From positions 124,001-188,000 of IMG/VR virus record IMGVR_UViG_3300025009_000050: 64,000 nt of DNA. One strand, written 5' to 3'. Numbering within the stretch: the stretch's first letter is position 1; every line of letters starts with the position of its first letter. Both the position numbers and the translations under genes were made by a program. Of this stretch, positions 39,748-64,000 are shown one piece after another. The notes under the pieces are model-generated. The model searched no databases. It was not told where the DNA came from and saw only the letters and a program-made list of their open reading frames with translations.

Positions 39748-41031
39748 TTATCTCCTTCTTAGTTCTAATTTTAAATCAGCGACTTCAAGACGTAGGTTGT
39801 TATTAGTATTTTCTAAGTTTATTAACCTTTCCATCAAACTATCTACCGATGGGGTTATGCTATTAAATAAATCCTCTGTATTCTTTTGTCTGCTTATTAT
39901 ACTGGAGAGCTTATTATTCATTCCATCAATTAAAGTTGAAAGCTTCTCTTGTTGTAAATTGTCTATGTTCAGTCTATCTCGAAGTTGTTTACCAATTATA
40001 CTATCAACCTTTACGGTTTTACAATGTTCTGAAGGACTTACAAACATGTCTCCGCACACCTCAAGATTACAGGCTAAACACCTATCACAATATGAATCGT
40101 GTTCACACTCATAACACTTCTCTAAACTACTTCTATTATAACTACGGAATATACTAGATTTGTCTAAGTTAATACCCGTATGAATGCTACCCATTTTATA
40201 GTCTTCTGTTCCTCTGTTTCTGTCGTAAGTATAGAACCTAAGGCATGGATATATGTCTCCATTAGGAGTTATCCCAATTGATTTATGTCCAGCTCCACAT
40301 GTCTTATCTGGGTTGATGTAAGGTGGTAAACCAAGATAATGACTAAGTGGATCGAAAGTAAAAGACTTCCCAGACCTATGAAGCCCATACATATAGTCAC
40401 TTATCATCCTCAACTGTCTTTGATATTCCTTAACTTCCTTCTCTGACCAGGTAGTTTCTTGTACGCATTGTGTCTTAATGTTATTAATACCATACTTATT
40501 ATGATAAAATATGACACTTTCAGCTAAGTACTTAACGTTATCTGGTTGTATCGTTATGCGAACAGAATAGTTAATTGATGGTCGAGCAACCTTTGGTAGG
40601 TTGACATCGACCATATCAAATGAATCTTTACCGTTAGCCATTGGTCTGTTCTTATTCTGCACCTTAGCAATACCGTCGATACTAAATTGGATATCGTCTA
40701 TTTCTTCTATTACATCTATCATATCGTCTGTTAATAATGTTAGGTTAGTAGACATACCAATTTTACATTGCTTCCCAGTTTCTTCTTCCTTAGATCTTAT
40801 ATATGGGATAATATGTTTGATAACATCAAAGTTTAGTAGTGGTTCCCCACCAAATAGTTCCACTAGCAGTTTATTGCTACCAGAAGTAAATAGCATATCT
40901 ACAGAAGACTTAGCTAAGTTTAAGGTCATAACACTGCTAGCCTTACTCTGCTCATAGCAATAAACACAACGCAGATTGCAATTCTCTGTAAGCATTAAAT
41001 ATATACAATCTATCTTTGTATTAGATAACAC
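39748..41031 (-). CDS. Radical SAM / SPASM domain protein (427 aa)
   Basis: CxxxCxxC (NCNLRCVYC, 40957-40980), FGGEPLL, STN.TLL, FSIDG..KVQNKNR. SPASM cysteines CGAG...GDIYPC...CYEC...CDRCLAC...C...C. GTG start with GGAGG SD. Confidence 0.95.
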   Translation of the reverse strand: MLSNTKIDCIYLMLTENCNLRCVYCYEQSKASSVMTLNLAKSSVDMLFTSGSNKLLVELFGGEPLLNFDVIKHIIPYIRSKEEETGKQCKIGMSTNLTLLTDDMIDVIEEIDDIQFSIDGIAKVQNKNRPMANGKDSFDMVDVNLPKVARPSINYSVRITIQPDNVKYLAESVIFYHNKYGINNIKTQCVQETTWSEKEVKEYQRQLRMISDYMYGLHRSGKSFTFDPLSHYLGLPPYINPDKTCGAGHKSIGITPNGDIYPCLRFYTYDRNRGTEDYKMGSIHTGINLDKSSIFRSYNRSSLEKCYECEHDSYCDRCLACNLEVCGDMFVSPSEHCKTVKVDSIIGKQLRDRLNIDNLQQEKLSTLIDGMNNKLSSIISRQKNTEDLFNSITPSVDSLMERLINLENTNNNLRLEVADLKLELRRR

Positions 41032-48896: not shown

Positions 48897-51800
48897 CTAC
48901 ATATGATCTTCAGTATTGTGAGAAAACTTGTAGTCATCTCCGGTTAGTTCATTAAACAACCGTGGTATTCCAGAACCAGCACCCTTACCTTTGCCTTCCC
49001 AGAATAAATCCATTTTGCTTGGCTTATCTCCAATTACACACCCTTGATGGCCATTAAGTCCTGCAACAAGATTCTTGCCATGCGATCTGAGTGGTACAAC
49101 AATAATGGCTTGTCTATTCCTCTTCTGTCTTTTATAGGCTTCGAATATGCTATCAGCAAGAATCGTCAATCCAACTTCAGCTATTGTAGCGATGCCAAAT
49201 GGTGACAATGCCAGCCTAGCCACCATTGCTATGGATCTTCCAGAAAAAGCTAAAGCCCTACCCGTCTTTGCTGTTTGTAAGAATGTTTTCATCTTATCAT
49301 AGCCTTCAACTACATTTCCATACTTGCCGCTATAAGCAGCACTTCTTAATGATCTATTTATTTTAACATTCTTAAAGTACTCATATACTTTAGACCAATT
49401 CTTCTCCATCTTATATATATCTGCTCCCTCAGCCATAATATCATTAAGAACCCAATTATTCCCTGTAGCTTTCACAAGCATTTCAAGTCCTAACTCACCG
49501 AAGCTACTAGTTGTTCTTCTAGCAAATGCACCAAGTGAACTACCAGTTAGTTTCCTCCAAGCTCCTATTGCTGCCCAGTGTCCAGCAATATTAGCTGTAC
49601 TACCAGCTACGATTGTAGATGCCCAGTTAACATAATTTAAGAACATCTTATCATCTACTATTACGATAGCATCTGGACATATATTAGTAACAAATCCTGT
49701 ATCGTGACTTAGATGGTGAACGACTTGCTTCACGCCACACATGCCATGCATTTCATTTACTTCATCAGCAATATAACACATATCATGCGGCTTTATGGAT
49801 GGGTCTCCAATTACAGTAAGCTCTCCCTTATACATGTCCTTAACGAAGTCACGTAGTGTTTGTGCTGCAGCTGTATTGGCAAATCTCTTAGCATTTGTAT
49901 CCCCAAAATTGAAATAAGAATGTTCAAGGAAGTCTACATTAATTACGGCTGTTTTCTGCTTTTCTGGGTATATATCCTCGTCTGCATGTACGACCATAGA
50001 TGATTTAGGCACTCCACTCTTTGTCTTATACGAGGCTATAACGTTAGTGTAGACTCCTTCTTCTGAAGCTTTAATATTATTAGCTATAATATCACACCAA
50101 CTAAAGTATGTATGTATTTGGCAGAGTGGTTTACTAATCATCTCAGTAGCTGTTCGATCATATTTCTTATTGACCGGGTCCCATTTGTAGTTCCAAGCAT
50201 ATCTATCACATATTGGCCAGTGTGGTCTACCATAGAATAGCGTACTTCTAAACTCCATCGGTACCACGGTGGCTATATAGTCAGGGAATGCTACCGCTAA
50301 TGTTTGTGCTACGTCCCATACAGTTTTACCGAATAAAGGTACTACTATATTATCCTCATCACCTTTAGGGAATGGTACTCCCCAATGAAGATACCATCCC
50401 TGGTATAAATCATTCTTTGCATCTTCAGTTAAACTATCCTGTGCTACCAACGAATAAGGGTCCCAGATCCATTGACTATGGACACCAGTACCAGTTGAAG
50501 TATATATATTAGCAGCTATCTCACCTAGTTTTTCATCCCTTTTCCATGGCAATAGCGAATCTAATTTACCTTCTGGAAATGGAAAATCACGGGGATTACC
50601 AAAGTGAGTTATGCCAAGTGGGTTTTCTGGCCTATCAAATAAATTCCATAACCATTGCTTATCAGGTTCTTTCTGGTTTATCACCTGTTCTATCCAATTC
50701 CATACCGGATTGTTGTGTCTTGCCATAAGATAACATAGAGTACTTCTAGCCTCACTGTTCATATGAGAGCCGTCATTCAGTTTGTCTGGTTCTCCACCAA
50801 TCTGGTTGCATAACTCAAGACCGTCACCTTGAGCTACTATTTCAATAATATCTCCACCAGAATCAAGTTCTGTTATAGAGCCATTAAACATTATAGGTAG
50901 AGCTTGAGCATTAGATCCATATCCCATTCTTAAATGTATCCTAGCTCCTGTTTGTAGGTATAACGCAGACACATATTCCTTCCTGGCGTCAATCAATGAT
51001 TGATGATTGAATTGACCAAAGAATAGCTCATTCCATTCATACTTCTGATCGTACTTAGGATATTCAAGATTCATATCATATCTAGTCAAGTTATCATATA
51101 CATTAGTCATCCTAATGACACAAGTATCAGCGGCTATCTTCCTAGACTTGATTATGTCTATAGATTGAATAGAGTTAAATCCGTAGAAGTTATCCCACAG
51201 TTTAATCCAACTAACCCAACGACCTTCATCTATGAGTAGCATTTGGAATGATGGGAACGCTCTGAGTAGTCTTCCTCTGTGATCAGTTTCTAGCATGTCA
51301 GTAAATGAATCTCTAACTATCTTATTGTTATCAATCTGCGGTTCATGTGGACTAAAATTAATTTTAGTTGGTGAATTAGCTGCAGACATCTTTCCTTCTG
51401 TTTGATCTTCAACTTCAGATGGATAATCTGCATGGACTCCAGTTGTAGGAGGAGTATATTTCGTACCAAGCATTTCAGATCTAGTAGAACTAGAACCAGC
51501 CGATTTAAACTTCTCATACCATTTCTTAACCTTTGTGTAATAATCCCATGAACTTGGAGCGGTCAAATCATCTACATTTCCTTTGTTGTAAGCAACTACA
51601 GCCCAACCATATATATCTTCAGAATACTTAGGATTCTTTAATTTAGTTACTGCTATTATCTTTTCTATATAATATTTAGTACATACGTGAATATTATATT
51701 TCCAATCCCATGCTATTCTTCTAGCAGTTTCCAAGGTTAAACCATGTTGATCTAGCATATATTGTCCAAGTCCTACAGCAGATGAACCCTCTTCGTTCCA

Positions 51801-54800
51801 ATATGGCTTTTTATTTATAAATTGTAACCAAGATCTACTTTCTTGTGTTATGATAGCTTTCATCCATAATACAGCTGGCTCTTTAAGCATATCAGTACCT
51901 GTTAGCAAATGATCTACTTCTGATTCAATTGCTCTAGCAACAGCTTCCTCGTCTGGATTAACACCAATATGACTAGCAAAGTACTCTCCTTCTTCCTCGT
52001 GTCCTTTAAACCATCTATTTATTTCATTTTCAGTTGGTGAATAATTTATCATTGATTTATTACTTACATTCGGTTCGCTAACAGCCCTGTATTGCATAAT
52101 ATCAACATTAATCGCACTTTCACTTGAATCCCCATTTATCTTAACTGGAGGCTTTTCATCGGCATCAATATTAGATATATCATTCTTATATTGCTCTTGC
52201 TTTGCCTTCCCATATTTCTTATTAAGCTCTAGGTCTTCTTTAATCTTAGCCTCTGAGTACTTCTTTAGTTCATCACTCACTTTATATAATGGTTGATATG
52301 TTTCATTCTCATTAAGAGTAAGACTTGTAGGTACTCTGAGAGATGCTGTTCCTATCCTACATTTTATATCCATACCAGCTTTCTTCTCATCCTTCTCCTG
52401 TTCTTCCTTGTTTATCATATCACGCAAGTCTTTTCTGAGTGTATGCGGAGTATATATGAAGAAATCAGGATCAACAAACTTACCTGCTGACCAACCAGCC
52501 TCCTGAGGAAAGATATAGTTTATATTCGCTTTAGTAGTAAAGGTCTTAAGCTCGTCCCATGTAGGAAGTTCTAAGTCTGGATATACTTCAATATTTTTAA
52601 GTCTTTCTTCAACTATAACTTCTTCCATGCCGTAGAAAGATTTTACATTATTGAGATTGACTCCTTCTCCAGTGTTTAATGACTTCAGTCTTTCAGACCT
52701 ACGCTGAGTTTTATCAAAGCCAATCAGAGTAAGCACTATTTCATATCTATCTGGGAAACCACGTACGGTATTCACTGTTACATTTTCTACTAGTGTATAT
52801 CGAACTCCGAATAAATTTACTATTGGGTTATTAATCCCAAGATATCCACACACCATACCGAACTTGTAATCCCTAGTATATCTCTCAGCATCCCTGATCA
52901 TTTTAACAAGGTTCTTAACTGGCTCCTTACCTACCGAAGTCATGCTTATTTGTATGTAGGCATCCTGAGAGCCTAAATATTGATGAGTAGAGGCTTCACA
53001 TTGTTGTATCTGCATTGAACTAATTATATTTTCTAGACCAACATGGATGGATTCCACAACGAGACCCTTTATTCGTAACTCATCCATTAAAATGTTTTCT
53101 TCTGCGTTCTCAATCCTTTGTTGTCGTTGTTTCAAGTCATCTAATTTCTCAGCAAAATCATCTTGCTGAGTTTCATATCTATCTGCAATTGTATCTAATA
53201 GATGTTTGTCTTCTACATCAATCACATACCAACCATTTGATGGTTCGCCATAACCGTTAGCCTTCAGTAACTCAATATTTTGGTATGCGGTAATATTTAC
53301 ACGATACCTGCGTTTAGTATAATACATGGGATCACGTTTTACATATACTCCTGGAGCTTGGAATCTAATATCTTCCATCTTAGAATCTTGTATTCCAGTC
53401 AATTCATCTACTGAGACATCTTTGATTACTCCACTTGGCCAAGTCTCAGCTATCTTCTCGTATGCTTCTTGTTGCATAAATGCTTCTTCGCATCCTTCTC
53501 CATCACTATTAATCTTACTCCAAAGAGTATTAGAATCTGGGTATGTCATATCAAGCTTGCTCTTAGACTTTAGTAGCTCAGCTACCTCTTGTTTAATCTG
53601 CATCAAGTTAGATTCATTAGCTAATCTAAAAACTAAATCAGTACTACTGCCGTCTAATGGCTTAAGGTATATTCTATCTGCAGATCGCTCATTCATTGGC
53701 CCTTGGCAATACCACCTGAATAGTGGCCAACAGAAGGAGTCATAGAAGTCGTCCGTATAAGGCATATATGCTTGATGGTCAAACTTTAACATAGTTATAT
53801 TAACAACTATACAATCAGGGAATCCTGGTACAGTTTGAGCAGTCATATTGACTAATGTTACAGATTCTACCCCATGTACTTCTTCAAGGTAATCATTTTG
53901 GATAGGAACGAATGGGCTCTTCTTGAATTGAGATACTAGAGGTCTTAAGCCATTTACGTAGAATGTTGAACCATCGTTACCCTTAACTGGATAACCATTA
54001 ATATAGTCTTTATTATGGAAGAACAGTTCAACTTGTACTGCTATATCAGAGAACCCTGTCTTAGTTTGGATACTGCTCTTACTGCGTAATACAGGTACTT
54101 TATTGATCTTAGACTGTCTTGTTACTGTTATAGCCTGTGGAGGTATAGCTAATTCTACATCTCCTATTAGCATATAGCCAGGAGGTCTATTATCGCGCGG
54201 CATACGCTCATTCTCCATAGGTTCAACGAGATTTAGATTAGAGTTATAACCGACTTGTGGTCTATAATTTATGCTTGTTACGGTGGGATCTACTACTTCA
54301 GGTTTCCTCTTTTTATGAGTAGTCCATGATGATACGGAGACATGCCCGCTATTCATATTCATTACATCGCCAAGATTACTCTCGATCAAGCTTCTATTCA
54401 CATTCACAGAATTATACTCATCTGTGTATACTACGGCAAGTCTACGATTATAAATGTCTGTAGCAAATACTATTTCACCATCAGTCTTACTTAATACAGA
54501 TAAATCTAAGACTACAATACTACCCTCTTCTAGTATGCTTTTTGTAAACTCTTTAGCTTTTTCACCAATAGCACGTGCCTCATCTAAACTAAGGCCCTCA
54601 GTTATTGAGTAAGCGCTGGAATGAGTCTCTTGATACTGGTTACCAGATGTTTCAGGACAATTCACTCCTATGAAGCGCACATTAAAAGATGTATCTTCTG
54701 GTTCTAAGCCACATGCTTCGATAGTATCTCCGTCAATAACCCTAATTACCGAAGCTCTCATTATGTGATTCTGTAGCGTATCTATTGTAGGTTTATCCTC

Positions 54801-54815
54801 ATAATAAAGAGCCAT
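48897..54815 (-). CDS. Baseplate hub-like protein fused to an N-terminal thermonuclease (SNase) domain and a central SLT lytic transglycosylase
   Basis: SNase motifs VIDGDT, VRFIGVNCPE, DIYNRRLAVVY. SLT motifs AIITQES, AVGLGQ, AVVAYNKG. Hub-like ADTCVIRMTN...RIHLRMGYGS...FNGSITE. Start placed at ATG 54815 (TAATG overlap, GGGAGG upstream) rather than the track's TTG at 54830. Confidence 0.82.
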   Translation of the reverse strand: MALYYEDKPTIDTLQNHIMRASVIRVIDGDTIEACGLEPEDTSFNVRFIGVNCPETSGNQYQETHSSAYSITEGLSLDEARAIGEKAKEFTKSILEEGSIVVLDLSVLSKTDGEIVFATDIYNRRLAVVYTDEYNSVNVNRSLIESNLGDVMNMNSGHVSVSSWTTHKKRKPEVVDPTVTSINYRPQVGYNSNLNLVEPMENERMPRDNRPPGYMLIGDVELAIPPQAITVTRQSKINKVPVLRSKSSIQTKTGFSDIAVQVELFFHNKDYINGYPVKGNDGSTFYVNGLRPLVSQFKKSPFVPIQNDYLEEVHGVESVTLVNMTAQTVPGFPDCIVVNITMLKFDHQAYMPYTDDFYDSFCWPLFRWYCQGPMNERSADRIYLKPLDGSSTDLVFRLANESNLMQIKQEVAELLKSKSKLDMTYPDSNTLWSKINSDGEGCEEAFMQQEAYEKIAETWPSGVIKDVSVDELTGIQDSKMEDIRFQAPGVYVKRDPMYYTKRRYRVNITAYQNIELLKANGYGEPSNGWYVIDVEDKHLLDTIADRYETQQDDFAEKLDDLKQRQQRIENAEENILMDELRIKGLVVESIHVGLENIISSMQIQQCEASTHQYLGSQDAYIQISMTSVGKEPVKNLVKMIRDAERYTRDYKFGMVCGYLGINNPIVNLFGVRYTLVENVTVNTVRGFPDRYEIVLTLIGFDKTQRRSERLKSLNTGEGVNLNNVKSFYGMEEVIVEERLKNIEVYPDLELPTWDELKTFTTKANINYIFPQEAGWSAGKFVDPDFFIYTPHTLRKDLRDMINKEEQEKDEKKAGMDIKCRIGTASLRVPTSLTLNENETYQPLYKVSDELKKYSEAKIKEDLELNKKYGKAKQEQYKNDISNIDADEKPPVKINGDSSESAINVDIMQYRAVSEPNVSNKSMINYSPTENEINRWFKGHEEEGEYFASHIGVNPDEEAVARAIESEVDHLLTGTDMLKEPAVLWMKAIITQESRSWLQFINKKPYWNEEGSSAVGLGQYMLDQHGLTLETARRIAWDWKYNIHVCTKYYIEKIIAVTKLKNPKYSEDIYGWAVVAYNKGNVDDLTAPSSWDYYTKVKKWYEKFKSAGSSSTRSEMLGTKYTPPTTGVHADYPSEVEDQTEGKMSAANSPTKINFSPHEPQIDNNKIVRDSFTDMLETDHRGRLLRAFPSFQMLLIDEGRWVSWIKLWDNFYGFNSIQSIDIIKSRKIAADTCVIRMTNVYDNLTRYDMNLEYPKYDQKYEWNELFFGQFNHQSLIDARKEYVSALYLQTGARIHLRMGYGSNAQALPIMFNGSITELDSGGDIIEIVAQGDGLELCNQIGGEPDKLNDGSHMNSEARSTLCYLMARHNNPVWNWIEQVINQKEPDKQWLWNLFDRPENPLGITHFGNPRDFPFPEGKLDSLLPWKRDEKLGEIAANIYTSTGTGVHSQWIWDPYSLVAQDSLTEDAKNDLYQGWYLHWGVPFPKGDEDNIVVPLFGKTVWDVAQTLAVAFPDYIATVVPMEFRSTLFYGRPHWPICDRYAWNYKWDPVNKKYDRTATEMISKPLCQIHTYFSWCDIIANNIKASEEGVYTNVIASYKTKSGVPKSSMVVHADEDIYPEKQKTAVINVDFLEHSYFNFGDTNAKRFANTAAAQTLRDFVKDMYKGELTVIGDPSIKPHDMCYIADEVNEMHGMCGVKQVVHHLSHDTGFVTNICPDAIVIVDDKMFLNYVNWASTIVAGSTANIAGHWAAIGAWRKLTGSSLGAFARRTTSSFGELGLEMLVKATGNNWVLNDIMAEGADIYKMEKNWSKVYEYFKNVKINRSLRSAAYSGKYGNVVEGYDKMKTFLQTAKTGRALAFSGRSIAMVARLALSPFGIATIAEVGLTILADSIFEAYKRQKRNRQAIIVVPLRSHGKNLVAGLNGHQGCVIGDKPSKMDLFWEGKGKGAGSGIPRLFNELTGDDYKFSHNTEDHM

Positions 54816-55099
54816 TATCTTCCCTCCCAATTAGCTAACTCTATATACATAATCGATTCATCAATATATTCAACATAAACATCGGCCCTAAATAGTTTCT
54901 TAGGAGTATTGTCTATAGGTTTGAATGGACCTAGCGTACTCATTAAGTTGTATAATTTAGGACCGATAGTATTGCTATCTGCTGGTTGTGGATTAGAATA
55001 TGTGTGAACATATTTCCCATCTACCCTTGCAGCTATATCCCACCTATCATAATCAGAATAGGATACACCTATTAACTTTCCACTAGATCTTATGATCAT
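54815..55099 (-). CDS. Small hypothetical protein (94 aa)
   Basis: GGAGG SD at 55108-55112; its TAA overlaps the ATG of the hub gene. Confidence 0.75.
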   Translation of the reverse strand: MIIRSSGKLIGVSYSDYDRWDIAARVDGKYVHTYSNPQPADSNTIGPKLYNLMSTLGPFKPIDNTPKKLFRADVYVEYIDESIMYIELANWEGR

Positions 55100-55111
55100 T
55101 CACGTATCCTC

Positions 55112-58100
55112 CTAGAATGCTTGGCCCTTGGTCAAGGCATTAGTTACAACGCTTTGCACCCACATATTATCTATCCTCTGAGTGTTATCATTAGACGTAA
55201 TATTCATATTCATATTAACTGGCATTGCAGATGATATCTGTCCTTGTACTAATTGTCCGATCTGCTCATTAGACAAGCCATTAGCATCCCTAGCTCTAAT
55301 CATAACCTGTAGGTTTTCGTAACCTTCTCCACTCTGTGTTATCCTAGCTACTGGTCCTCCAGGAGAAGCATCAGGAGTAGGTATATAACCACCGCCATCT
55401 ATGGGTGGAGCTTGGTCCGGCTGAGGCATCATGTCTTTAGGTAGAGGGTCTGCAAACATATTACCTACCATCATTAGTCCTGCAAATGCTCCAGCTCCCC
55501 ATCCTGCACCAGCTAATTTAGAGCCACCAGCGACATGTTCAACATCCCTGAATATATTTCGCATTGTTTGTTCGCCAACAGTAACCATGTCCGGCCTAGT
55601 TCTCTGGTCAGCATAGGCACTATTTAGAACCATATTAGATGAAGCCCTCTCATCTAATGCCCACTTGGTTCGTTGTTCAGCACGTTCAAATGCCTTTCTC
55701 TCTAGTTCCTCAGCCTTCTGCTCACCGTGCAATATCCTCCATACGTTTGTTACTGAGGAGGTTGGTGCTTCTCCAGAAAGGTTTCCATTTAACACATCGA
55801 CCAGGGTGTTAAGATTTTTAATCCCTGAACTTACGCCCATTCTATTTGTTGCGCTGTGTATTACCCCTTCTAGATCTCCACCCATAACAGTCTTTAGATC
55901 ATTGACAGCGCCAAACCCTTCATACACAGTAGCGATCTGACGAACTGCAAATTTAGAACTACCCTTTATTCCTCCACTATAGGCTTGTCTGCGGTACTCT
56001 TCCATGTCTGTAGCGTCTACATCCATAGCTCCTACTATCTTCGCATGTTCAATGAAGGTTTCTCTATCTCCACGAATCATTGCATTGACCATTTCGGATG
56101 AAGAACTTATTCTCTTATCAAGTAGCTTATTCCTCTCTGCTTCTTGTCCTGCAGAATCTATTCCAGCCCATTCATCAATTGTTTTTGCTAGATGATCATC
56201 AAGTGCAGATTTCGAGAAGTGTTTAGACGAGATAGAAGACTGTGTTACCAATTCACCGAGGGCTGTTACAGCTTGTGCTTTCTTCAAGTCAAACGACTGA
56301 GGATTTATTCTCATAGCAATCTCTGCCATCTTACGCATTGAAGTAGCTACGTTCGAAGAGTAACCAATATATGAGCGGCCAAGTCTTGCTTCTAATTCGG
56401 CTCTTGCGACGCTTCCTACGGTTTGTAGCTCTGCCTTTGGTAGATCTATATTTTCACCCGTATAAGCCTTCACCCAATCTCCGTATGATGCACTGCTACT
56501 CTTTCTATTGTCTGCTTCATATAGCTTAGATACTAATTCATCATAGAACTGTCTTCTAGGTTCTATCTCTCTTATATGCGCTGCTATTTCACCTATTGCA
56601 CCTGTGCCAGACCGTAGTTGAGATTCAATCTGCCATCTGGTTTTGCCTTTGAAGTGTGCAAGCAGAGTGGACATAAAATCACCATCGTTGTCTGCTGCAT
56701 AAGCTACGGCATCACCAACAGTTACTTGAATTGCATGAGGAGCTAGCCTATCTAATGCCTCGTTAACTCTGAGCCAGGTAGGTTCTATAGACCTTAAGCC
56801 TTCTGTAGGATAACGACCTACTATACCAGGCAGACCTTTAACTCCATACTTCTCCTGAAGTTCTCTAGTGTCTCCGAGTGCTAATTCTTCTAATAGCTCA
56901 GGAACACCTTTCTTCATACCCTTAGTCATTTCTCTTAATCTACCAAGGGATATTTCAGCAGTAGCTGCTGCTTTCTTTTGTCCAGGAGAGAATGTTTGAA
57001 CTAAGAATTGTCCGCTATGTTGGAGTCTAGCAGATTCTATACTGTTATAAACAAGACCTTTAGAATCGCTGACACCTCTGATGTTTACGTTGGTGAAATG
57101 ATCCATTGCCTTTTGTAGGCTTGTGCTTGCTTCTTTCCCTGTTAGGTCAAGCGTAGCTATGTCTTGGAGCGTTCTAATCACTCTACCACTTGCTGCTAAT
57201 AATTCATTAGCCTGTGGCATTTGAGCAACCCCTAGTTTCCTAGGCTGTCCTATAGGTAGAAAGACTTTATTGATTATATTATCACCAGCAGTTACATAGA
57301 ACGGTAACTCAAATACCGCTCCACCACGGGACAATATTTTCTCTGCCTTCTTTGGAGTAAGAGCTCCAGGTTCTCCAGAATGTACTTGGTTATTAGCTAT
57401 CTTCTCTATGTCGTCATACCACGTACCGGTATAGTCGATATCACTCTTGACATCTCCAGAACGTAGGAATCTTTTAAATGATGATAATGATACTCTGCCT
57501 TCTCCAGTTTCTCCTATAGGAGTCTGAGAATGTATTACTGTGTCTCTACTGTCTATCATTCCAGTTAGACTATTAATTGACCTTTCATACTTTCTTAACT
57601 GTGACTTTACTTCCTTCTTCCCAGCTTCTATGCGTCCATTTTCGCTAAGCTTGTCTGCAACTGCGCCATCTAATAGATCTACTCCAGCTTGTTCTCTAAC
57701 CATCTTCTCGTATTCTTTAGCTGTTGCAGTTAACCCATTAAGTCGAAACATGCCTATTTCCTTGGGTCCTATCTTGTATATACCACCCTCACTACCTACT
57801 GCTTTGAACCATGGTTCAATAGGTTGTGCTCCTACATTCTCATAACCAGTCATTATATTACCAACACCAGCAACATTAATTAATAACTTGTCCGTTAAGT
57901 TGCTTCCTATAATGTCACTTACTTTATCAAGCACTTGCGTCTTGAATAGCTTGTGATCTATTACTTGGTTCTTAGGATTATTGATCATCACAAGCATTTT
58001 ATTCTTGCTTCCTGGTACGTCTTCAAACTTGAACCCGCTATTGCCGAAGAAGTTATTGAGAACTTTGATTACATCATCTTCTACTTTGTTTCTTACTAGA

Positions 58101-61100
58101 TTCTTTGTAGTAATCTGATTCTGTACTTCATTAACCATAGCCCTTACTTGGCTACTTATGATGTCTCCATGTCCGCCGTGCTTGAGTGCTTGCGAGCCCA
58201 TTACAAGATGAAGCTTATCGGCCTCTGCTCCGAACAAACTGTTCCATCTATCGTTCTCAACCAGAGTCAAAGTCATCTTATCACCGCTAGAGGTTATAAG
58301 TTTAAGACCATTTGCTGCTGGTAGTGTTCTTTCTACTGAAACTTTATATTTGTTTTCTCCAAGTTTCGTTATAGCATTTACTACACCAGGCTGTTTCTTA
58401 TTATACCTTGCATCTCCCTGAAGTACGCCGAAAGTATTACCTTCGCCATCTACTATCTTAGACTCTACCAATTGACCAATGGTGAATGGCTTTTCAGAGG
58501 GAGCGATAGTATAAGGGTCGCCCTTCTCTATCGAAGCTAGTATCTCCTTATTAATGTCACTAACTACATACTCGTTAACCATCTTCATCTTGAGAAGATC
58601 ATTAGCTATATCGCCACGCATAAATGCTCTGGCGTCATACGTCGATTCTACTAATCCGGTTAAAGGAGCTCCAGTCCTCTCAGCCTCAGCAATCATCTTC
58701 TGTACTTGGTTATCATCCATGTAAGCTGTCTTAACAGTAACCCATGGTGCTAAGTTATTACCTGTGACTCCATATCTAGCTTTCCCTGCTTCAGTCATGA
58801 GTAGGGGGTTAGCTAGTTCACTATACTTCGTTCTAAGTGCTTCTGCTGATTTAGGGTGGAATGGATGGATATTCTCTGCCTGTGTCATCCTCATTGTTGC
58901 TGCAGATGAATGGTATCCAAATGGAATGAACTGACGTATGTCATTGACACTACGACTGATTCTTCCATTCTTACCAGTAAACTGAGCTTCCTTGAGTGTG
59001 TGAGGATTTAATACGTCATTTATAACATCGATAGGAGTACCAAGTTTTACACTTAATCTCTCTGCAATGGTTCTATTCAGGTTTACAGAGTCAGTTAAGT
59101 TCAAACCTGAGATGTCCTTCCCAGCTAGGAATTCTTTTATTCCTTCAAAGTAGATTACTTCACTACGCTGTCTTATACTAGCATGACTTAGGTTGCGTAT
59201 CTTCCTAGTATCCATTACTTCATCGGAGTCAAGGAAATTGGCACCAGATAAGTCTTTAAGTACTTTGTTCTGAGCCCAGTTGACAAGTGCCTGTGCTTGT
59301 GCATAGTCTCCTTTCAACATTGCTTCTTTAACTCGTTTAGATATACCAACCTGAGATTGTAGAATCTTATCGAAGCTTGTTTCAACACCAATGTTCTTAC
59401 CATCAAGTGTGAAGTCCATCTGGTTAATTCTCATAACCCTACCAACAGTAAGAATCCTTCTTTCATCCACCAATGGGATGTTAACCTTAACTACATCGCT
59501 ATTATTCATTATCTGTTCTACTGTCTGCTTACCTACTGTTGCTGCTTTCTTCTCATCATATAGAGCAAAGATAAAACCCTTATTGTCAGGTGATGACAAT
59601 ATAGTCCCATCTATATTTGCATCTGTAAGATACCTTGATAGTAGCTTCTTTATTGGTTCTTCTGCTTTCCTATTAAGCCCGAATAAAGGCCCTAGTCTTT
59701 TTAGTGGAGAAAGCTGTTCATGAATAATAGCATTATGCGCTTCTAACATCTTAGCAAACTCTTGGTTTGCCGCTAGGTTAGGAACAAAAGCTTTATCTAT
59801 CTTCTGCCATGCACTACTACCACGTCTTTGTCCTTCATCTAGCGCATGATTAGCTACCAACCGCATTTGATCAGGGGTAAGCTTTTCCCATATGCCTCCA
59901 TTATTGGCATCAACATGGGCAACCTTATATGACAAGAACTCATTAGCTAAGTTCTTAGCTTGTATGTCGTCTATCTTCATACCAGAAACAATATCATTAG
60001 CTATCCTAGTCCTATCAAAAAGCTTTGCTGCTATTTGCTTAAGTACAAAGTTACTTTCTCTCGGACCTTGCTTCTGGATCTCTGATAGTCTTAGAAAGTT
60101 AGTAACTTCAGTACGATCTAATATATGCTTACCACCTAACTTATTTATTAGCACTGGTAGTTCGATTTTGTCGATGGGTCTTTTGGTGATTTGCCTTAGC
60201 TGTGACACTATACCTTTATAACTACCAAGATTAAGAACTATATTATCTGATAGTTGTAACATTCTATTGTTAGTTGTAGTCTTAATAACTTTCTTAGCTG
60301 GACTAATCCCACCAGTAGCTTTACGTAAGTCAGGTATTTGGACCCTACCTTCCATTATGTCTTGTAGGGCAGTAAGGGCAAAGTCCTTCTGTACTCCTTT
60401 AAGACTTTGGAATGTTCCGCTACTAATGACAGCATTAATCATTCCTCTCTCAGCTCTTAGCCTATCTTGCATATAGTAGAAGTTTCTAGCTTGTTGCTCA
60501 GAATTGAATAGATCTTTAAATTGTCCCTTAGTTAAATCATCCATAGAAGCTCTATTGACTCCAGCTTTATCAATTGCATCAAGAGCTCTCATGTATCTCT
60601 CCGCTCTTACATGGCCTCCATCGGTATCAAAGATTCTATAATATGCACGTAGAGCTCTGTCCTTCATTCTCTCTGTCCTAGTTTCTTCACCACTGACACC
60701 AGTAATATGTTCAGCATTATATGGTACTAAATGAGAGAATATACTACGTATACTATCGAACCCAGTACCACTAATATTCTCAGGTCTAACAAAGGTATGG
60801 TATAATCCTTCATCTACATTACGTAGGGTTAATGCCCATCCACCATGTTCAAAACCTTCAAGAGCGCCCTTCTCTATCTGCTTAAAGCTATGAATTCTGT
60901 ACTCGGTATTCTTATATAGGTTCCCACTAGATATAGGCTTATCGGGGTTGTCTGAGTAAGCATCTATGAATTTGCCTGTATCATCAAGTTTATATATCCC
61001 ATCGTACTTATTCTTTTCATAAGGACTTAATCCGGAAATTGAGAATAGACTACTATCAGACTTTATTGTCTTGTTGTCTATAGCAAGTACTCCACCACTT

Positions 61101-62470
61101 ATAGCATTCCAGTCTAATGATATGCTAGCCCCAGCTGCTATTCTTCTAGCACTAGCTATCTTACTATTAATATTACCTCCAATGGAGTTGAGTAACATAG
61201 GTACTGCTTCAGCATCTCCACCAGCAAAGTGTTCAATTCTATTATTGAAGGCATTAGACAATACCTCTAATGTAGTTAGACCTTGTTTCCCTCTTATCCC
61301 ACCACTTAATGTCTTGTAGTGTTCCCTCATTTTCTTGTCACCAATTAGCGGTGCTATCTGTCCGATAGGGTCATGATATGCAAGGTCAATAAGTCTATTA
61401 ACATCCAACGCTCTATGAGTACTATTAATGATATGTAGGTTCTTCATTAGGGTTTCAATGCTACTACTAATAGGACTCTGTGGTCCAAGAGCAGTCCTAG
61501 TCTGATTAAAGTATTCCATCATGGCAGGGATATCGTGTTCTAAGAAGTTATACCCCATGAGGTTACCGCCATTCTTAGCTATGTTCTCTACATGATGATT
61601 TATAGCTTTAATCATGCCATCAAGATAGCTACCTGAGTTTCCATTGCCATATAAATTTTTTAAGCCATTTCTCATCTGTGAAGTGTATGCTTTCAAATTA
61701 GTAAATGTAGATCTGTCTGGTAACTCAGATGGTGACTTAAGCTTATCTTTATTGACAAGTCTTACATCTCCTATGCCTGGGATTGTCTCTGTCTTAAATA
61801 CCTCAGAATCTTGATACCTCATTAACCACCACAGTGTACGTCTATGATCATCTGTTAATCCAGCCATTCCTGTGCTCTCTACTTGTTTGATTAAATTTTT
61901 TAGTTCTACCTTCTGCTTTTCATCTACGAAGCCAGCTAATGTCATAGTATTCATTTTATCTAGCATTGGAGAGCCACTCTTGAGGCCATTGAACTGCCAA
62001 CTAGACAAACCTACCTCAGTCATAGCAAATAGATTCATGCTCTGATTCTTTGCAAGTGGACTGACACCGAGGTTTTCAATATCTAAGCTTAAGTGAGTCA
62101 TGCCTACATTTTTAACCATGTTCTCCCATGCGGTTATTGTTCTTTGCGCTCTAGTAGCTCCCCTGGTATTTATGTAATTAAACACACTAGTGCTTGGGTT
62201 ACTAAGTACCCCATTTATTTCAGCGTTTAGTGCCCTACTAACTTTAGATCTCTCTACTACGCCACCAATGTTTCTAGGTGCACCAATGAAGTCTGGGATA
62301 TTCTTAGAACGTATTATCTGTTCTTTAGTCGGTTCTGAATTAGGGTCGTAGTAATTCCTACCTGAACCACCAAAGTTCATAAGAACTTTTGGAGTACCTA
62401 TACTATTAATAATACCTTTCTGTTCCAATACACTAGGTATACTAAAGAGTTCGCTATCATTAAACTTCAT
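55112..62470 (-). CDS. Single-chain two-barrel (double-psi beta-barrel) DNA-dependent RNA polymerase with N-terminal DEDDh 3'-5' exonuclease; probable virion RNAP (2452 aa)
   Basis: RpoB-like, in order: IPFGYHSSA..MRMTQA, VKTAYMD...TYDARAFM, GLKLITSSGDK. RpoC-like, in order: RLQHSGQF, IVGRYPT, AIQVTVGDAVAYAADNDGDFM, ALGELVTQSSISSKH. Exonuclease: LDIE, GYNFLEHD, HFAGGD. Confidence 0.88.
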   Translation of the reverse strand: MKFNDSELFSIPSVLEQKGIINSIGTPKVLMNFGGSGRNYYDPNSEPTKEQIIRSKNIPDFIGAPRNIGGVVERSKVSRALNAEINGVLSNPSTSVFNYINTRGATRAQRTITAWENMVKNVGMTHLSLDIENLGVSPLAKNQSMNLFAMTEVGLSSWQFNGLKSGSPMLDKMNTMTLAGFVDEKQKVELKNLIKQVESTGMAGLTDDHRRTLWWLMRYQDSEVFKTETIPGIGDVRLVNKDKLKSPSELPDRSTFTNLKAYTSQMRNGLKNLYGNGNSGSYLDGMIKAINHHVENIAKNGGNLMGYNFLEHDIPAMMEYFNQTRTALGPQSPISSSIETLMKNLHIINSTHRALDVNRLIDLAYHDPIGQIAPLIGDKKMREHYKTLSGGIRGKQGLTTLEVLSNAFNNRIEHFAGGDAEAVPMLLNSIGGNINSKIASARRIAAGASISLDWNAISGGVLAIDNKTIKSDSSLFSISGLSPYEKNKYDGIYKLDDTGKFIDAYSDNPDKPISSGNLYKNTEYRIHSFKQIEKGALEGFEHGGWALTLRNVDEGLYHTFVRPENISGTGFDSIRSIFSHLVPYNAEHITGVSGEETRTERMKDRALRAYYRIFDTDGGHVRAERYMRALDAIDKAGVNRASMDDLTKGQFKDLFNSEQQARNFYYMQDRLRAERGMINAVISSGTFQSLKGVQKDFALTALQDIMEGRVQIPDLRKATGGISPAKKVIKTTTNNRMLQLSDNIVLNLGSYKGIVSQLRQITKRPIDKIELPVLINKLGGKHILDRTEVTNFLRLSEIQKQGPRESNFVLKQIAAKLFDRTRIANDIVSGMKIDDIQAKNLANEFLSYKVAHVDANNGGIWEKLTPDQMRLVANHALDEGQRRGSSAWQKIDKAFVPNLAANQEFAKMLEAHNAIIHEQLSPLKRLGPLFGLNRKAEEPIKKLLSRYLTDANIDGTILSSPDNKGFIFALYDEKKAATVGKQTVEQIMNNSDVVKVNIPLVDERRILTVGRVMRINQMDFTLDGKNIGVETSFDKILQSQVGISKRVKEAMLKGDYAQAQALVNWAQNKVLKDLSGANFLDSDEVMDTRKIRNLSHASIRQRSEVIYFEGIKEFLAGKDISGLNLTDSVNLNRTIAERLSVKLGTPIDVINDVLNPHTLKEAQFTGKNGRISRSVNDIRQFIPFGYHSSAATMRMTQAENIHPFHPKSAEALRTKYSELANPLLMTEAGKARYGVTGNNLAPWVTVKTAYMDDNQVQKMIAEAERTGAPLTGLVESTYDARAFMRGDIANDLLKMKMVNEYVVSDINKEILASIEKGDPYTIAPSEKPFTIGQLVESKIVDGEGNTFGVLQGDARYNKKQPGVVNAITKLGENKYKVSVERTLPAANGLKLITSSGDKMTLTLVENDRWNSLFGAEADKLHLVMGSQALKHGGHGDIISSQVRAMVNEVQNQITTKNLVRNKVEDDVIKVLNNFFGNSGFKFEDVPGSKNKMLVMINNPKNQVIDHKLFKTQVLDKVSDIIGSNLTDKLLINVAGVGNIMTGYENVGAQPIEPWFKAVGSEGGIYKIGPKEIGMFRLNGLTATAKEYEKMVREQAGVDLLDGAVADKLSENGRIEAGKKEVKSQLRKYERSINSLTGMIDSRDTVIHSQTPIGETGEGRVSLSSFKRFLRSGDVKSDIDYTGTWYDDIEKIANNQVHSGEPGALTPKKAEKILSRGGAVFELPFYVTAGDNIINKVFLPIGQPRKLGVAQMPQANELLAASGRVIRTLQDIATLDLTGKEASTSLQKAMDHFTNVNIRGVSDSKGLVYNSIESARLQHSGQFLVQTFSPGQKKAAATAEISLGRLREMTKGMKKGVPELLEELALGDTRELQEKYGVKGLPGIVGRYPTEGLRSIEPTWLRVNEALDRLAPHAIQVTVGDAVAYAADNDGDFMSTLLAHFKGKTRWQIESQLRSGTGAIGEIAAHIREIEPRRQFYDELVSKLYEADNRKSSSASYGDWVKAYTGENIDLPKAELQTVGSVARAELEARLGRSYIGYSSNVATSMRKMAEIAMRINPQSFDLKKAQAVTALGELVTQSSISSKHFSKSALDDHLAKTIDEWAGIDSAGQEAERNKLLDKRISSSSEMVNAMIRGDRETFIEHAKIVGAMDVDATDMEEYRRQAYSGGIKGSSKFAVRQIATVYEGFGAVNDLKTVMGGDLEGVIHSATNRMGVSSGIKNLNTLVDVLNGNLSGEAPTSSVTNVWRILHGEQKAEELERKAFERAEQRTKWALDERASSNMVLNSAYADQRTRPDMVTVGEQTMRNIFRDVEHVAGGSKLAGAGWGAGAFAGLMMVGNMFADPLPKDMMPQPDQAPPIDGGGYIPTPDASPGGPVARITQSGEGYENLQVMIRARDANGLSNEQIGQLVQGQISSAMPVNMNMNITSNDNTQRIDNMWVQSVVTNALTKGQAF

Positions 62471-62482
62471 TGGTGTCCCACC

Positions 62483-64000
62483 TTAAACATTGATTATATT
62501 TCCAGGATCTCTATTCATAACATTGATTATCTCATTGGTTCTATCCTTGTCTATTGATACATTAACATTCATTGAATGGGCTTCCGCAGCTGGACCATGA
62601 GATATTTGCACATCTATATCAGACAGTCCCGCTCCACGTAGTACTTGACTTAGCCTAGTTTGTATACTTCCTATGTAACTACTAGGCTTGAAGGGATCTA
62701 CATCAGGAGCAGCTTCAGCATATGCCTCATCATCGGGCCAGTATCCGAATTCAGACATATCTAGTGCTTCGTTCTTTATTACCTTGAGTTTAATGTCCTC
62801 CAAACTTACGTTAGCTTTCCAGCCTTCCCAGTTAGCAGTTGGGAGATAATGACCACGGAAGTAATCAGTGATACCGACCTTCTCATTTTGTTCCATTCCC
62901 CATCTTGCCTGGTATAGTCTACGTTGGTTCTTAGGAACTAGACTGAGAATTTCCTTCCTCTCACTTTGGTCTGCGCTCATGAAGTACTGATAAAATTCTC
63001 TATCCTTCTTAGGTAAGGCACGATATATGTTTACCATATCTCCAAGTGGATCAACGCCATATAATGTTGACTTCGCTTGTAGATTGTAGTATAGAGCTTG
63101 GATTGCATCAGGACCTAGTTGAGTGAGTCTTCTATCCTCGTCTATAGCAGTTAGCTCTCTATTGATATCTTTAAGCTTAGACTTGTTCAGGTCTGTATCA
63201 AGTTGTCCATCAACATCTTGTAACTTAAGCCATCTCTTAAGTGACTTAAGGGTGTTTCTCCTAGCCTTATTAATTCTTCCGCGCTTAGTCTCATCAGCAA
63301 TTATATCCTCTACATCTACGCCTTCTGTAGCTATAGCTTGCTTTCTAGCTTTCTCGTAGAGTCCCTTATATTTAACGTACTTGAGCATATCGAAGTATTC
63401 GTTGATCTCACGTTCTTTACGACGACGCTTGGGTATCCATACTTCACCTGATGAGTCTGTAGTCTCCCCAAGTACACGAGCTGTTGATAAGCCACCAGCA
63501 GTTACAGCACCGGTAAATGTGCCAAGCTTTCTACCGAGTACATTAGAGCCGAATAGCCTACCTAGTACTGCACCATATAAAGCAGCAATTGGTGGTGACT
63601 TGGCAGCGAATGCCTCTAGTGTTGGCTTCATAATTCCGCTCCAGGGATCGTACCATGGTTGCCATGCTTTACCGTGTACTTCCGTACGCTTATACATTTC
63701 AAGCGGAGATCTCACTTGTAAGAACTTTGTATGGAAAGCTGTATCAAGGTGAGCAAACCATTCCCACCACTTACCTACTGTTATCTCCTCAGGATAGAAT
63801 CTAGCGTTAACTCCAACAGCGCTGAAATCAGTCTCCTTCTCAGTAACCTGATCTCCAACTGTTCTGAGTAATTTAGCTTGTAGTGGACCACCTTCTGGAG
63901 TATATACTACGGCATGCATGGTGCTCAGTACGTCCTTCCGGACTCTATTAAGCGGGTCCTTGTCTATACCTATCTGTACTTTAGCTCCAGGGTATATTAT
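62483..64000 (-). CDS. C-terminal part of a large tape-measure-like / ejection protein; partial, open to the right edge
   Basis: The frame stays open from 63919 to 64000 (IIYPGAKVQIGIDKDPLNRVRKDVLST precedes the track's MHAVVY). Helical, charged composition with an Ala/Gly hydrophobic stretch (IAALYGAVLGRLFGS...GTFTGAVTAGGL). Confidence 0.6.
   Translation of the reverse strand: MIYPGAKVQIGIDKDPLNRVRKDVLSTMHAVVYTPEGGPLQAKLLRTVGDQVTEKETDFSAVGVNARFYPEEITVGKWWEWFAHLDTAFHTKFLQVRSPLEMYKRTEVHGKAWQPWYDPWSGIMKPTLEAFAAKSPPIAALYGAVLGRLFGSNVLGRKLGTFTGAVTAGGLSTARVLGETTDSSGEVWIPKRRRKEREINEYFDMLKYVKYKGLYEKARKQAIATEGVDVEDIIADETKRGRINKARRNTLKSLKRWLKLQDVDGQLDTDLNKSKLKDINRELTAIDEDRRLTQLGPDAIQALYYNLQAKSTLYGVDPLGDMVNIYRALPKKDREFYQYFMSADQSERKEILSLVPKNQRRLYQARWGMEQNEKVGITDYFRGHYLPTANWEGWKANVSLEDIKLKVIKNEALDMSEFGYWPDDEAYAEAAPDVDPFKPSSYIGSIQTRLSQVLRGAGLSDIDVQISHGPAAEAHSMNVNVSIDKDRTNEIINVMNRDPGNIINV

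Follow-up and report, generated by a model that had tools for sequence, protein, structure and literature searches.

Results

The locus and its giant tail gene

The stretch of DNA analysed here, hereafter the window, comprises 64,000 nucleotides from IMG/VR virus record IMGVR_UViG_3300025009_000050 (positions 124,001 to 188,000 of that record). All genes of the window lie on the minus strand, the G+C content is 34-42%, and one of the genes, at 55112..62470, is an intact open reading frame (ORF) of 2452 amino acids (aa) with zero internal stops. The middle part of its product is almost certainly a true homologue of the two-barrel RNA polymerases (RNAPs), with both catalytic halves in one chain. 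An earlier reading, made from the letters alone (the sequence-only reading), had proposed such an enzyme at 56200-59000. That one polypeptide in the tail/baseplate operon holds both two-barrel halves, beta then beta-prime, is now supported by profile comparison, by AlphaFold2 (AF2) modelling with Foldseek, and by the invariance of the catalytic residues. The span given was too narrow, since the RNAP-like module covers ~56171-59623 and the gene 55112-62470. The features of the gene, in the order of the protein and with the evidence for each, are the following.

55112..62470, minus strand: whole gene, giant 2452-aa tail protein at the tape-measure position (intact ORF; full-length homologues)
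61133..62158, minus strand: DEDDh (DnaQ-like) 3'-5' exonuclease-like domain, aa ~105-446 (ExoI D130-x-E132, ExoII N308..D313, ExoIII H414..D419)
56171..59623, minus strand: single-chain two-barrel RNAP core, aa ~950-2100, beta-like then beta-prime-like half (AF2 model, Foldseek, BFVD)
59378..59614, minus strand: beta-sheet segment, aa 953-1031 (conserved IPLxxxxGxxxxGxQxR at aa ~997-1015; beta-strand prediction; weak RpoB match)
58271..58309, minus strand: basic pair of the beta-type barrel, aa 1388-1400, G-x-K1390-x5-G-x-K1398-x-T (conservation; RpoB pattern)
56651..57058, minus strand: beta-prime-type double-psi barrel, aa 1805-1940, with SGxF 1819-1822, RYPT 1886-1889 and ADNDGD 1926-1931 (hhalign against RpoC, shuffle control)
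56678..56692, minus strand: predicted metal-binding Asp triad D1927, D1929, D1931 (DNDGD; invariance, single signature per member)
56321..56389, minus strand: bridge-helix-like segment, aa 2028-2050, A-R-x-G ... N2040 ... R2046 (invariant residues; long predicted helices; assigned by eye)
56219..56263, minus strand: trigger-loop-like segment, aa 2070-2084, with invariant Q2077, S2081 and K2083 (conservation; likeness by eye to RpoC 924-936, GEPGTQLTMRTFH)
55454..55510, minus strand: Gly-rich hydrophobic segment, aa 2321-2339 (consensus GGxxxxGxxxGAxxFxGL)
55115..55423, minus strand: C-terminal conserved domain, aa ~2350-2452 (conservation profile; the most conserved part of the family, and the only part that aligns with gp146 of phage 0305phi8-36)

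All ten motifs quoted in the sequence-only reading were located in the ORF, and the E. coli RpoB and RpoC motifs that it cited agree with those of strain MG1655. In the beta-like half they include IPFGYHSSAATMRMTQA (aa 1182-1198, window 58877-58927), NLAPWVTVKTAYMD (aa 1239-1252), TYDARAFM (aa 1277-1284) and GLKLITSSGDK (aa 1388-1398, window 58277-58309), and in the beta-prime-like half RLQHSGQF (aa 1815-1822, window 57005-57028), DNDGD (aa 1927-1931, window 56678-56692) and the trigger-loop-like ALGELVTQSSISSKH (aa 2070-2084, window 56219-56263). IVGRYPT (aa 1883-1889) starts at 56804 as had been given, and its end moves from 56818 to 56824. Two features had been overlooked, the N-terminal DEDDh exonuclease-like domain and the bridge-helix-like AR..G..N..R motif.

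A small family with invariant catalytic positions

An exhaustive HMMER scan of 1.84 billion protein cluster representatives returned only 19 family members, mostly with lengths of 2260-2450 aa and an identity to the query of 19-33%; where their sources give a name, it is 'hypothetical protein'. Full-length homologues are encoded by the Bacillus phages KLEB27-3 (gp034, 'structural protein') and WH1 (gp095, 'virion structural protein'), and another homologue, a BFVD entry, is labelled 'Minor tail protein'. No match was obtained when the whole 2452-aa protein was scanned against Pfam, PHROGs and NCBIfam or compared by phmmer with PDB sequences, or when 24 kb was compared with phage genomes by megablast. 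A word-indexed homologue search found nothing beyond the protein itself, and a single-protein search of IMG/VR returned the same phage only. Homologues carry only "structural", "minor tail" or "hypothetical" labels and are missed by the Pfam, PHROG and NCBIfam models. Within the family, RNA_pol_Rpb1_2 (PF00623) is the Pfam family matched by most members (4 of 19, best E 0.0023), and no Pfam RNAP model attains its threshold.

The positions that are invariant or nearly so in 18-19 sequences are G1820, R1886, P1888 and the triad D1927, D1929 and D1931, followed C-terminally by A2028, R2029, G2036, N2040, Q2077, S2081 and K2083. D-x-D-x-D is invariant in all 19 sequences, and the pattern [RK]xPx{20,100}DxDxD has exactly one match in each of the 18 aligned full-length members. 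The combination of [RK]xP and DxDxD is the signature that Chaban et al. used as a filter (PMC10770324 Supplementary Data 4). As judged from this conservation, the putative catalytic residues are under purifying selection in a family that is 20-30% identical overall.

The beta-prime half

The profile of the 19 members aligned by hhalign with E. coli RpoC over 143 columns, onto residues 317-471 (E 6e-4), and the alignment places SGxF, RxPT and ADxDGD in register. A trimmed block of the family gave P 2.2e-4 against RpoC in the same program. With RpoC 250-600 as the target, the family block scored 41.8, while 200 shuffles averaged 14.0 (standard deviation 2.4, maximum 25.2), corresponding to z ~11. 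Among PDB sequences, the family profile weakly matched phiKZ gp55 (7ogp_A, E 0.43), with SGR, NRxPT and ADxDGD collinear and in register. Taken together, the sequence comparisons indicate that this half is homologous to RNAP beta-prime, beyond chance, and they bear out the beta-prime-like half of the sequence-only reading.

The two helical elements expected on the C-terminal side were assigned by eye, from resemblance to RpoC 779-799 (bridge helix) and RpoC 924-936 (trigger loop), and neither was recovered by hhalign. The N-x5-R spacing in the bridge-helix-like segment equals that of RpoC N792..R798. In the trigger-loop-like segment, H2084 is not conserved in the family.

The beta half and the fold of the core

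The sequence-only reading had pointed to aa ~1100-2150 as the part to model and compare, and RNAP subunits are indeed among the structural matches listed. The AF2 model of aa 1100-2150, built from the 19-sequence alignment, had a mean predicted local distance difference test score (pLDDT) of 76 and a predicted template-modelling score (pTM) of 0.69, and Foldseek matched it to 750 PDB chains at E<=1e-3. The best 50 of the 750 are all RNAP second-largest subunits (E 5.6e-7 to 7.6e-6, 366-649 aligned columns), including vaccinia Rpo132 (E 5.6e-7), Rpb2-type subunits of Pol I, II and III, archaeal B, E. coli beta (634 columns) and a chain of the AR9 non-virion RNAP (nvRNAP). Among the predicted viral structures in BFVD, the two best matches are family members (TMq 0.55 and 0.51), and the next matches listed are RNAP subunits of both kinds (Rpb2-like and Rpb1-like), including cowpox Rpo147, plus some unnamed or uncharacterised entries. 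No PolD-like DNA polymerase or primase structures were found among the Foldseek PDB matches listed, and these two candidates were rejected.

As a side observation, two ~800-aa 'uncharacterized' BFVD entries from Acinetobacter phage vB_AbaM_ME3 (A0A172Q021_2 and A0A172Q0S6) aligned with the RNAP core model over 720-780 columns (E 2e-6 and 1.7e-5). From these model comparisons, the two ME3 jumbo-phage entries may be unannotated RNAP polypeptides.

The beta-like half proposed in the sequence-only reading thus stands as a fold (Foldseek E 5.6e-7), and its individual motif alignments did not reach significance in hhalign against RpoB. The best RpoB match is weak (RpoB 100-151 / 117-144, E 0.16, P 0.056) and lies away from those motifs. 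The beta half is therefore supported by the modelled fold and not by sequence. The segment at aa 953-1031 may correspond to the conserved N-terminal RpoB region (IPLMTDNGTFVINGTERV), which we treat as a lead only. The basic pair falls within predicted strands of the part matching Rpb2/beta: each of the 18 aligned members has K or R at both 1390 and 1398, and GxKx5GxK occurs once in the 2452-aa protein and once in RpoB (GDKMAGRHGNK at 1063).

Short motifs are easily found in 2452 residues, and the beta-like ones fail the sequence significance test, so that chance resemblance in a very long protein had to be considered. This explanation is ruled out, to the point of being negligible, by the shuffle control of the beta-prime block (z ~11), by the 750 PDB chains at E<=1e-3 of which the best 50 are all RNAP, by the family-wide invariance of the catalytic residues, and by the RNAP matches in BFVD. 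Judging from the retained residues, the core is probably also catalytically active.

The N-terminal exonuclease-like domain

The N-terminal part of the protein is probably a DEDDh exonuclease-like domain, on the basis of its motifs and profile matches. The six residues D130, E132, N308, D313, H414 and D419 are invariant in 16 sequences, and the family profile matches a DEDDh exonuclease chain in the PDB (9l8b_A, E 3.7e-4) and gives weak matches to the corresponding domains of DNA Pol II and PolC; Pfam RNase_T was matched by 2 family members. In the AF2 model of aa 1-1150 (pLDDT 71.5), aa 105-446 form a confident alpha/beta domain with the motifs placed as in the DnaQ fold. Foldseek of this multi-domain model against the PDB gave no significant match, and hhalign against E. 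coli DnaQ aligned the ExoIII region only (E 0.22, not significant). The domain could serve in 3'-end trimming, in RNA processing, or in an attack on host nucleic acid.

Position in the tail module

The 2452-aa protein is also present on 244-kb metagenomic contigs, including JGI 3300001242 C687J13896_1000008, on which the genes upstream of it encode a sheath, three tube-like proteins, two small chaperone-like proteins and a 1991-aa protein. The two neighbours that frame the gene in the window are listed below.

62483..64000, minus strand: C-terminal portion of the 1991-aa protein encoded upstream (context; gene truncated by the window edge, where its end appears as a 478-aa ORF)
48897..54830, minus strand: downstream baseplate-hub-like 1977-aa protein with an N-terminal SNase domain (context; Pfam SNase, phrog_20474, NCBIfam EcnA)

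Downstream of the RNAP-bearing ORF, the order is a 94-aa ORF, the 1977-aa hub-like protein, an M15 peptidase, and the baseplate wedge with Baseplate_J; beyond these come a radical-SAM protein and giant fibre-like proteins including a 4122-aa ORF. The order of chaperone-like pair, ~2000-aa protein, RNAP-bearing protein and hub recurs in two distant relatives (L012 and L013), and the gene order from the chaperone pair to the hub is also found in Bacillus phages KLEB27-3 and WH1.

Phage 0305phi8-36, described by Hardies et al. (PMC2147016), has in the equivalent slot gp146, a 2537-aa protein annotated as 'hypothetical tape measure protein' and as detected in virions by mass spectrometry (MS). Its position (chaperonins, giant protein, slot protein, hub) is the same and its length similar, and the hub-like 1977-aa protein is the positional equivalent of the gp147 hub. 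When the family profile was aligned with gp146 by hhalign, only the last ~100 residues aligned (E 6e-4), indicating a homologous C-terminal part of ~100 aa; the RNAP and exonuclease parts showed no detectable similarity to gp146, and neither the DxDxD nor the RxPT motif was found in it. Since the gene occupies the same slot as gp146 and its product has this C-terminal part in common with it, the 2452-aa protein itself holds the tape-measure position, and it corresponds by location to a tape-measure candidate whose C-terminal domain it carries. The sequence-only reading, which had put the gene between a tape measure and the hub, is to be amended in this respect. Gly-rich hydrophobic segments are common in tape measure proteins; the one at aa 2321-2339 passes the Kyte-Doolittle threshold of 1.4 in 5 relatives and not in the 2452-aa protein.

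The comparison with gp146 also bears on whether the core might be a dead scaffold, exapted without its catalytic activity into a tape-measure or ejection protein of purely structural function. The gene belongs to a structural operon, its homologues are labelled only as structural, and the slot tolerates the absence of the module, because gp146 lacks it entirely (no DxDxD, no RxPT). Dead domains, however, normally lose their catalytic residues, and here the Asp triad, R1886/P1888, the basic pair, A2028/R2029/N2040 and Q2077/S2081/K2083 are all kept at 20-30% family identity, so that we consider a dead scaffold improbable.

Still less probable is that the core is an ordinary, non-virion phage RNAP that was fused among the tail genes by happenstance and is freed by proteolysis in the infected cell. 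Its location in a late operon would mean that it is made late, as this explanation expects, but a late-made enzyme could not start the infection unless it were packaged. Moreover, the polymerase is fused in frame to a C-terminal domain common to an MS-detected virion protein, and the synteny from the chaperone-like genes to the hub is strictly conserved.

Several observations on the neighbouring genes stand apart from these questions. The full gene for the 1991-aa protein lies at L003:4013-9988 on a 244-kb contig, directly after the two tail-chaperone-like genes; family searches with its product gave no match. The protein has several hydrophobic stretches rich in Gly, and a stretch near aa 1400 looks nuclease-like by eye only. 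In the hub-like protein, aa ~24-155 form a domain of the staphylococcal-nuclease type (Pfam SNase 8e-6; NCBIfam Ca-activated nuclease EcnA 4e-11), behind which a large region matches a PHROG 'endolysin', and the tail tip of the window phage may thus deliver a second nuclease. The 94-aa ORF between the RNAP-bearing gene and the hub (54815-55099, minus strand) had no family match; it overlaps the hub ORF if the latter is read from a TTG start, and the gene calls on the metagenomic contigs include it. The radical SAM/SPASM protein (427 aa; window 39748-41031, minus strand) lies in the middle of the baseplate/fibre module, an unusual site for such an enzyme. In the 4122-aa ORF (window 19034-31402, minus strand), tail-fibre-like repeats were matched at aa ~340-1200 and a lactonase-type beta-propeller weakly at aa ~2750-2815, and the remainder was without match.

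Discussion

A proposed route from the tail to the first genes

The explanation that we favour, and hold to be reasonably likely as a whole, is by analogy that of a tail-lumen protein carrying a complete RNAP, which is injected and transcribes the genes that enter first. The host of this gene would be a contractile-tailed jumbo phage of ~244 kb, of the 0305phi8-36 / KLEB27-3 / WH1 lineage. The gene product would be a multi-domain protein of the tail lumen, in the tape-measure slot, which has retained the C-terminal anchoring domain and the Gly-rich hydrophobic segment, so that a DEDDh exonuclease-like domain is followed by a complete single-chain two-barrel RNAP and then by a tape-measure-type C-terminus. 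Within the putative RNAP, the beta-like module with K1390 and K1398 would precede the beta-prime-like barrel, in which D1927, D1929 and D1931 would bind Mg, and the bridge-helix-like and trigger-loop-like helices. By analogy with P23-45 gp96 (PMC10770324), the protein would be assembled into the tail. Contraction of the sheath would drive it out through the tube, before the DNA or with it, and its C-terminal part would tether it at the envelope. There the polymerase could transcribe the genes that enter first (pre-early/early) without relying on the host enzyme, and perhaps assist in pulling in the genome. Later genes might then be read by the host RNAP, redirected by phage sigma factors such as the two annotated in KLEB27-3.

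A different use of an active polymerase has to be weighed against this, namely that it acts not as the early-gene transcriptase but as a motor that pulls the 244-kb genome in by transcription, or as a maker of primers or short RNAs at the entry site, with the exonuclease processing the products. The structural and sequence evidence is the same for both, a fusion to an envelope-anchoring C-terminus would suit a stationary motor, and a simple transcriptase would not usually carry a DEDDh domain in cis. For 0305phi8-36, Hardies et al. considered injection assisted by an RNAP and judged it too slow for a genome of that size (PMC2147016). The best matches of the core are DNA-dependent transcriptases, and not primases, PolD or RNA-dependent enzymes. 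The motor or primer role cannot be told apart here from early transcription, the two are not exclusive, and as the explanation in place of early transcription we think it unlikely.

Several points weigh against early transcription by a tail-delivered polymerase. At the level of the core, none of the beta-like alignments of the sequence-only reading was recovered when the family was compared with E. coli RpoB by hhalign, and the Foldseek template-modelling (TM) scores to RNAP subunits are low (~0.2-0.27), reflecting partial alignment. As for the position, it is the 1991-aa protein, and not the 2452-aa protein, that comes immediately after the chaperone-like genes, and it could be the one that really measures tail length; the tape-measure label of gp146 is itself hypothetical, and the 1991-aa protein stands between the chaperone-like genes and the RNAP-bearing gene. 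The records of KLEB27-3 and WH1 do not give the basis of the 'structural' labels of their homologues. The search for a second RNAP, described below, covered the cultured relative KLEB27-3. The main uncertainties concern presence in the virion, catalytic activity, and the way in which a folded polymerase of ~1000 aa together with an exonuclease would be accommodated in, and pass through, the tail tube.

If delivery from the tail is correct, it becomes a sharper question how a tail tube can store a folded enzyme of this size and let it pass. Together with the nuclease of the adjacent hub, the exonuclease-like domain in the fusion suggests that such tails bring in several enzymes acting on nucleic acids. 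Some members of the family are cultured on non-pathogenic Bacillus hosts (KLEB27-3, with host Bacillus australimaris), so that the idea is directly testable.

Comparison with known RNA polymerases

The multisubunit RNAPs (bacterial beta/beta-prime, Rpb2/Rpb1, and those of poxviruses, giant viruses, phiKZ and AR9) give the best structural and sequence matches to the core of the window protein. They have in common with it SG(R)x, NRxPT, ADxDGD and GxKx5GxK, as well as the order of beta before beta-prime. They differ in that the core of the window protein is one chain of ~1150 aa, whereas the multisubunit enzymes consist of two subunits totalling ~2400-2750 aa; the linkers are much shorter in the core, and the distance from the Asp triad to the bridge-helix-like motif is ~100 aa in the window protein compared with ~320 aa in E. 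coli. Genes for further RNAP subunits that would go with the core are not known. A beta-beta-prime fusion as compact as this, with ~1150 residues and recognisable motifs of the cellular type, could be of use in modelling how RNAPs evolved and how small an active site of the multisubunit type can be.

The crAss-like phi14:2 gp66, SPbeta YonO and 0305phi8-36 orf99 are, like the core described here, single-polypeptide two-barrel enzymes of phages, and gp66 is also virion-delivered and part of a giant protein (PMC10770324, discussion). Enzymes of the YonO/gp66/orf99 type are absent among the best 50 PDB fold matches, which are all of the multisubunit type; gp66 was not compared directly. PF05183, the Pfam family of the YonO / RdRP-like clade, is absent from the Pfam matches of the 19 members. 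No match was found by phmmer between orf99 and all KLEB27-3 ORFs including gp034, and tblastn detected no homologue of orf99 in WH1, Edson or KLEB27-3. The impression of the sequence-only reading that this enzyme is unexpectedly close to cellular RpoB/RpoC has held: it looks closer to them than to other phage single-chain enzymes, as its best matches are subunits of multisubunit RNAPs and nothing was found against gp96 or orf99.

Within the lineage, 0305phi8-36 has a free-standing YonO-like orf99 and a slot protein without polymerase motifs, whereas in KLEB27-3, WH1 and the window phage the slot protein includes the polymerase. By sequence, this complementary pattern is suggestive, and few genomes are involved. 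In a survey of jumbo phages, the YonO-like enzyme is the only one attributed to the 0305phi8-36 group (PMC7824862). Among six-frame ORFs of at least 120 aa from all loci of KLEB27-3, only gp034 matches the family hidden Markov models or has the DxD[G..]D signature, and nothing in these ORFs matches orf99, RpoB, RpoC or gp96. The KLEB27-3 record has two sigma factors (gp089 and gp210) and no annotated RNAP, and Pfam found nothing RNAP-like in the large unannotated proteins near the genome end (gp276, gp277, gp001 and gp197). A tblastn search of the phage collection with an RpoC segment listed phiKZ-type phages.

Tentatively, the family (~20 clusters) might represent a lineage of its own among single-chain beta-beta-prime RNAPs, unrecognised so far, which branches with the multisubunit clade and not with YonO, the crAss-like enzymes or P23-45, and which is the sole RNAP of its phages, delivered by a contractile tail in a tape-measure-position protein and coupled to a DEDDh exonuclease. 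We consider this possible rather than probable. If true, it would be a self-contained, injected transcription machine with a 3'-5' nuclease in cis, a combination not described for any RNAP.

The tape-measure-fused virion RNAP of Thermus phage P23-45, gp96 (Chaban et al. 2024, PMC10770324), is the only one described, in a siphovirus; in the literature on tape-measure-fused two-barrel RNAPs we found only the P23-45 work, and none on KLEB27-3 or WH1. Both gp96 and the 2452-aa protein are giant tail proteins of long-tailed phages, occupy the tape-measure position and include a two-barrel RNAP. Both have the DxDGD signature and, elsewhere in the chain, a hydrophobic or membrane segment, and both are proposed to be delivered with the DNA and to transcribe the first genes. 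No sequence relationship between them was detected: hhalign of the family against the gp96 N-terminus gave E 0.49 and 0.14 in non-corresponding regions, which is not significant, and phmmer of the gp96 N-terminus found no match among the KLEB27-3 ORFs. In addition, the RNAP is N-terminal in gp96 (aa 1-~1100 of 5002) and central in the window protein (aa ~950-2100 of 2452), and P23-45 is a siphovirus whereas the window phage has a contractile tail and a jumbo genome. Unlike gp96, the window protein has an added DEDDh exonuclease-like domain, which is without precedent in tail-fused virion RNAPs, and no metallopeptidase was detected in it. P23-45 has a second, paralogous non-virion RNAP, whereas its counterpart is not recognisable in KLEB27-3, the cultured relative. 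If delivery from the tail holds, this unrelated second case would mean that the loading of a two-barrel polymerase into the tail arose more than once. What is new relative to gp96 is a putative version of the tail-fused virion RNAP that is unrelated in sequence to the known one, resembles the cellular type, is coupled to an exonuclease-like domain, and belongs to contractile-tailed jumbo phages.

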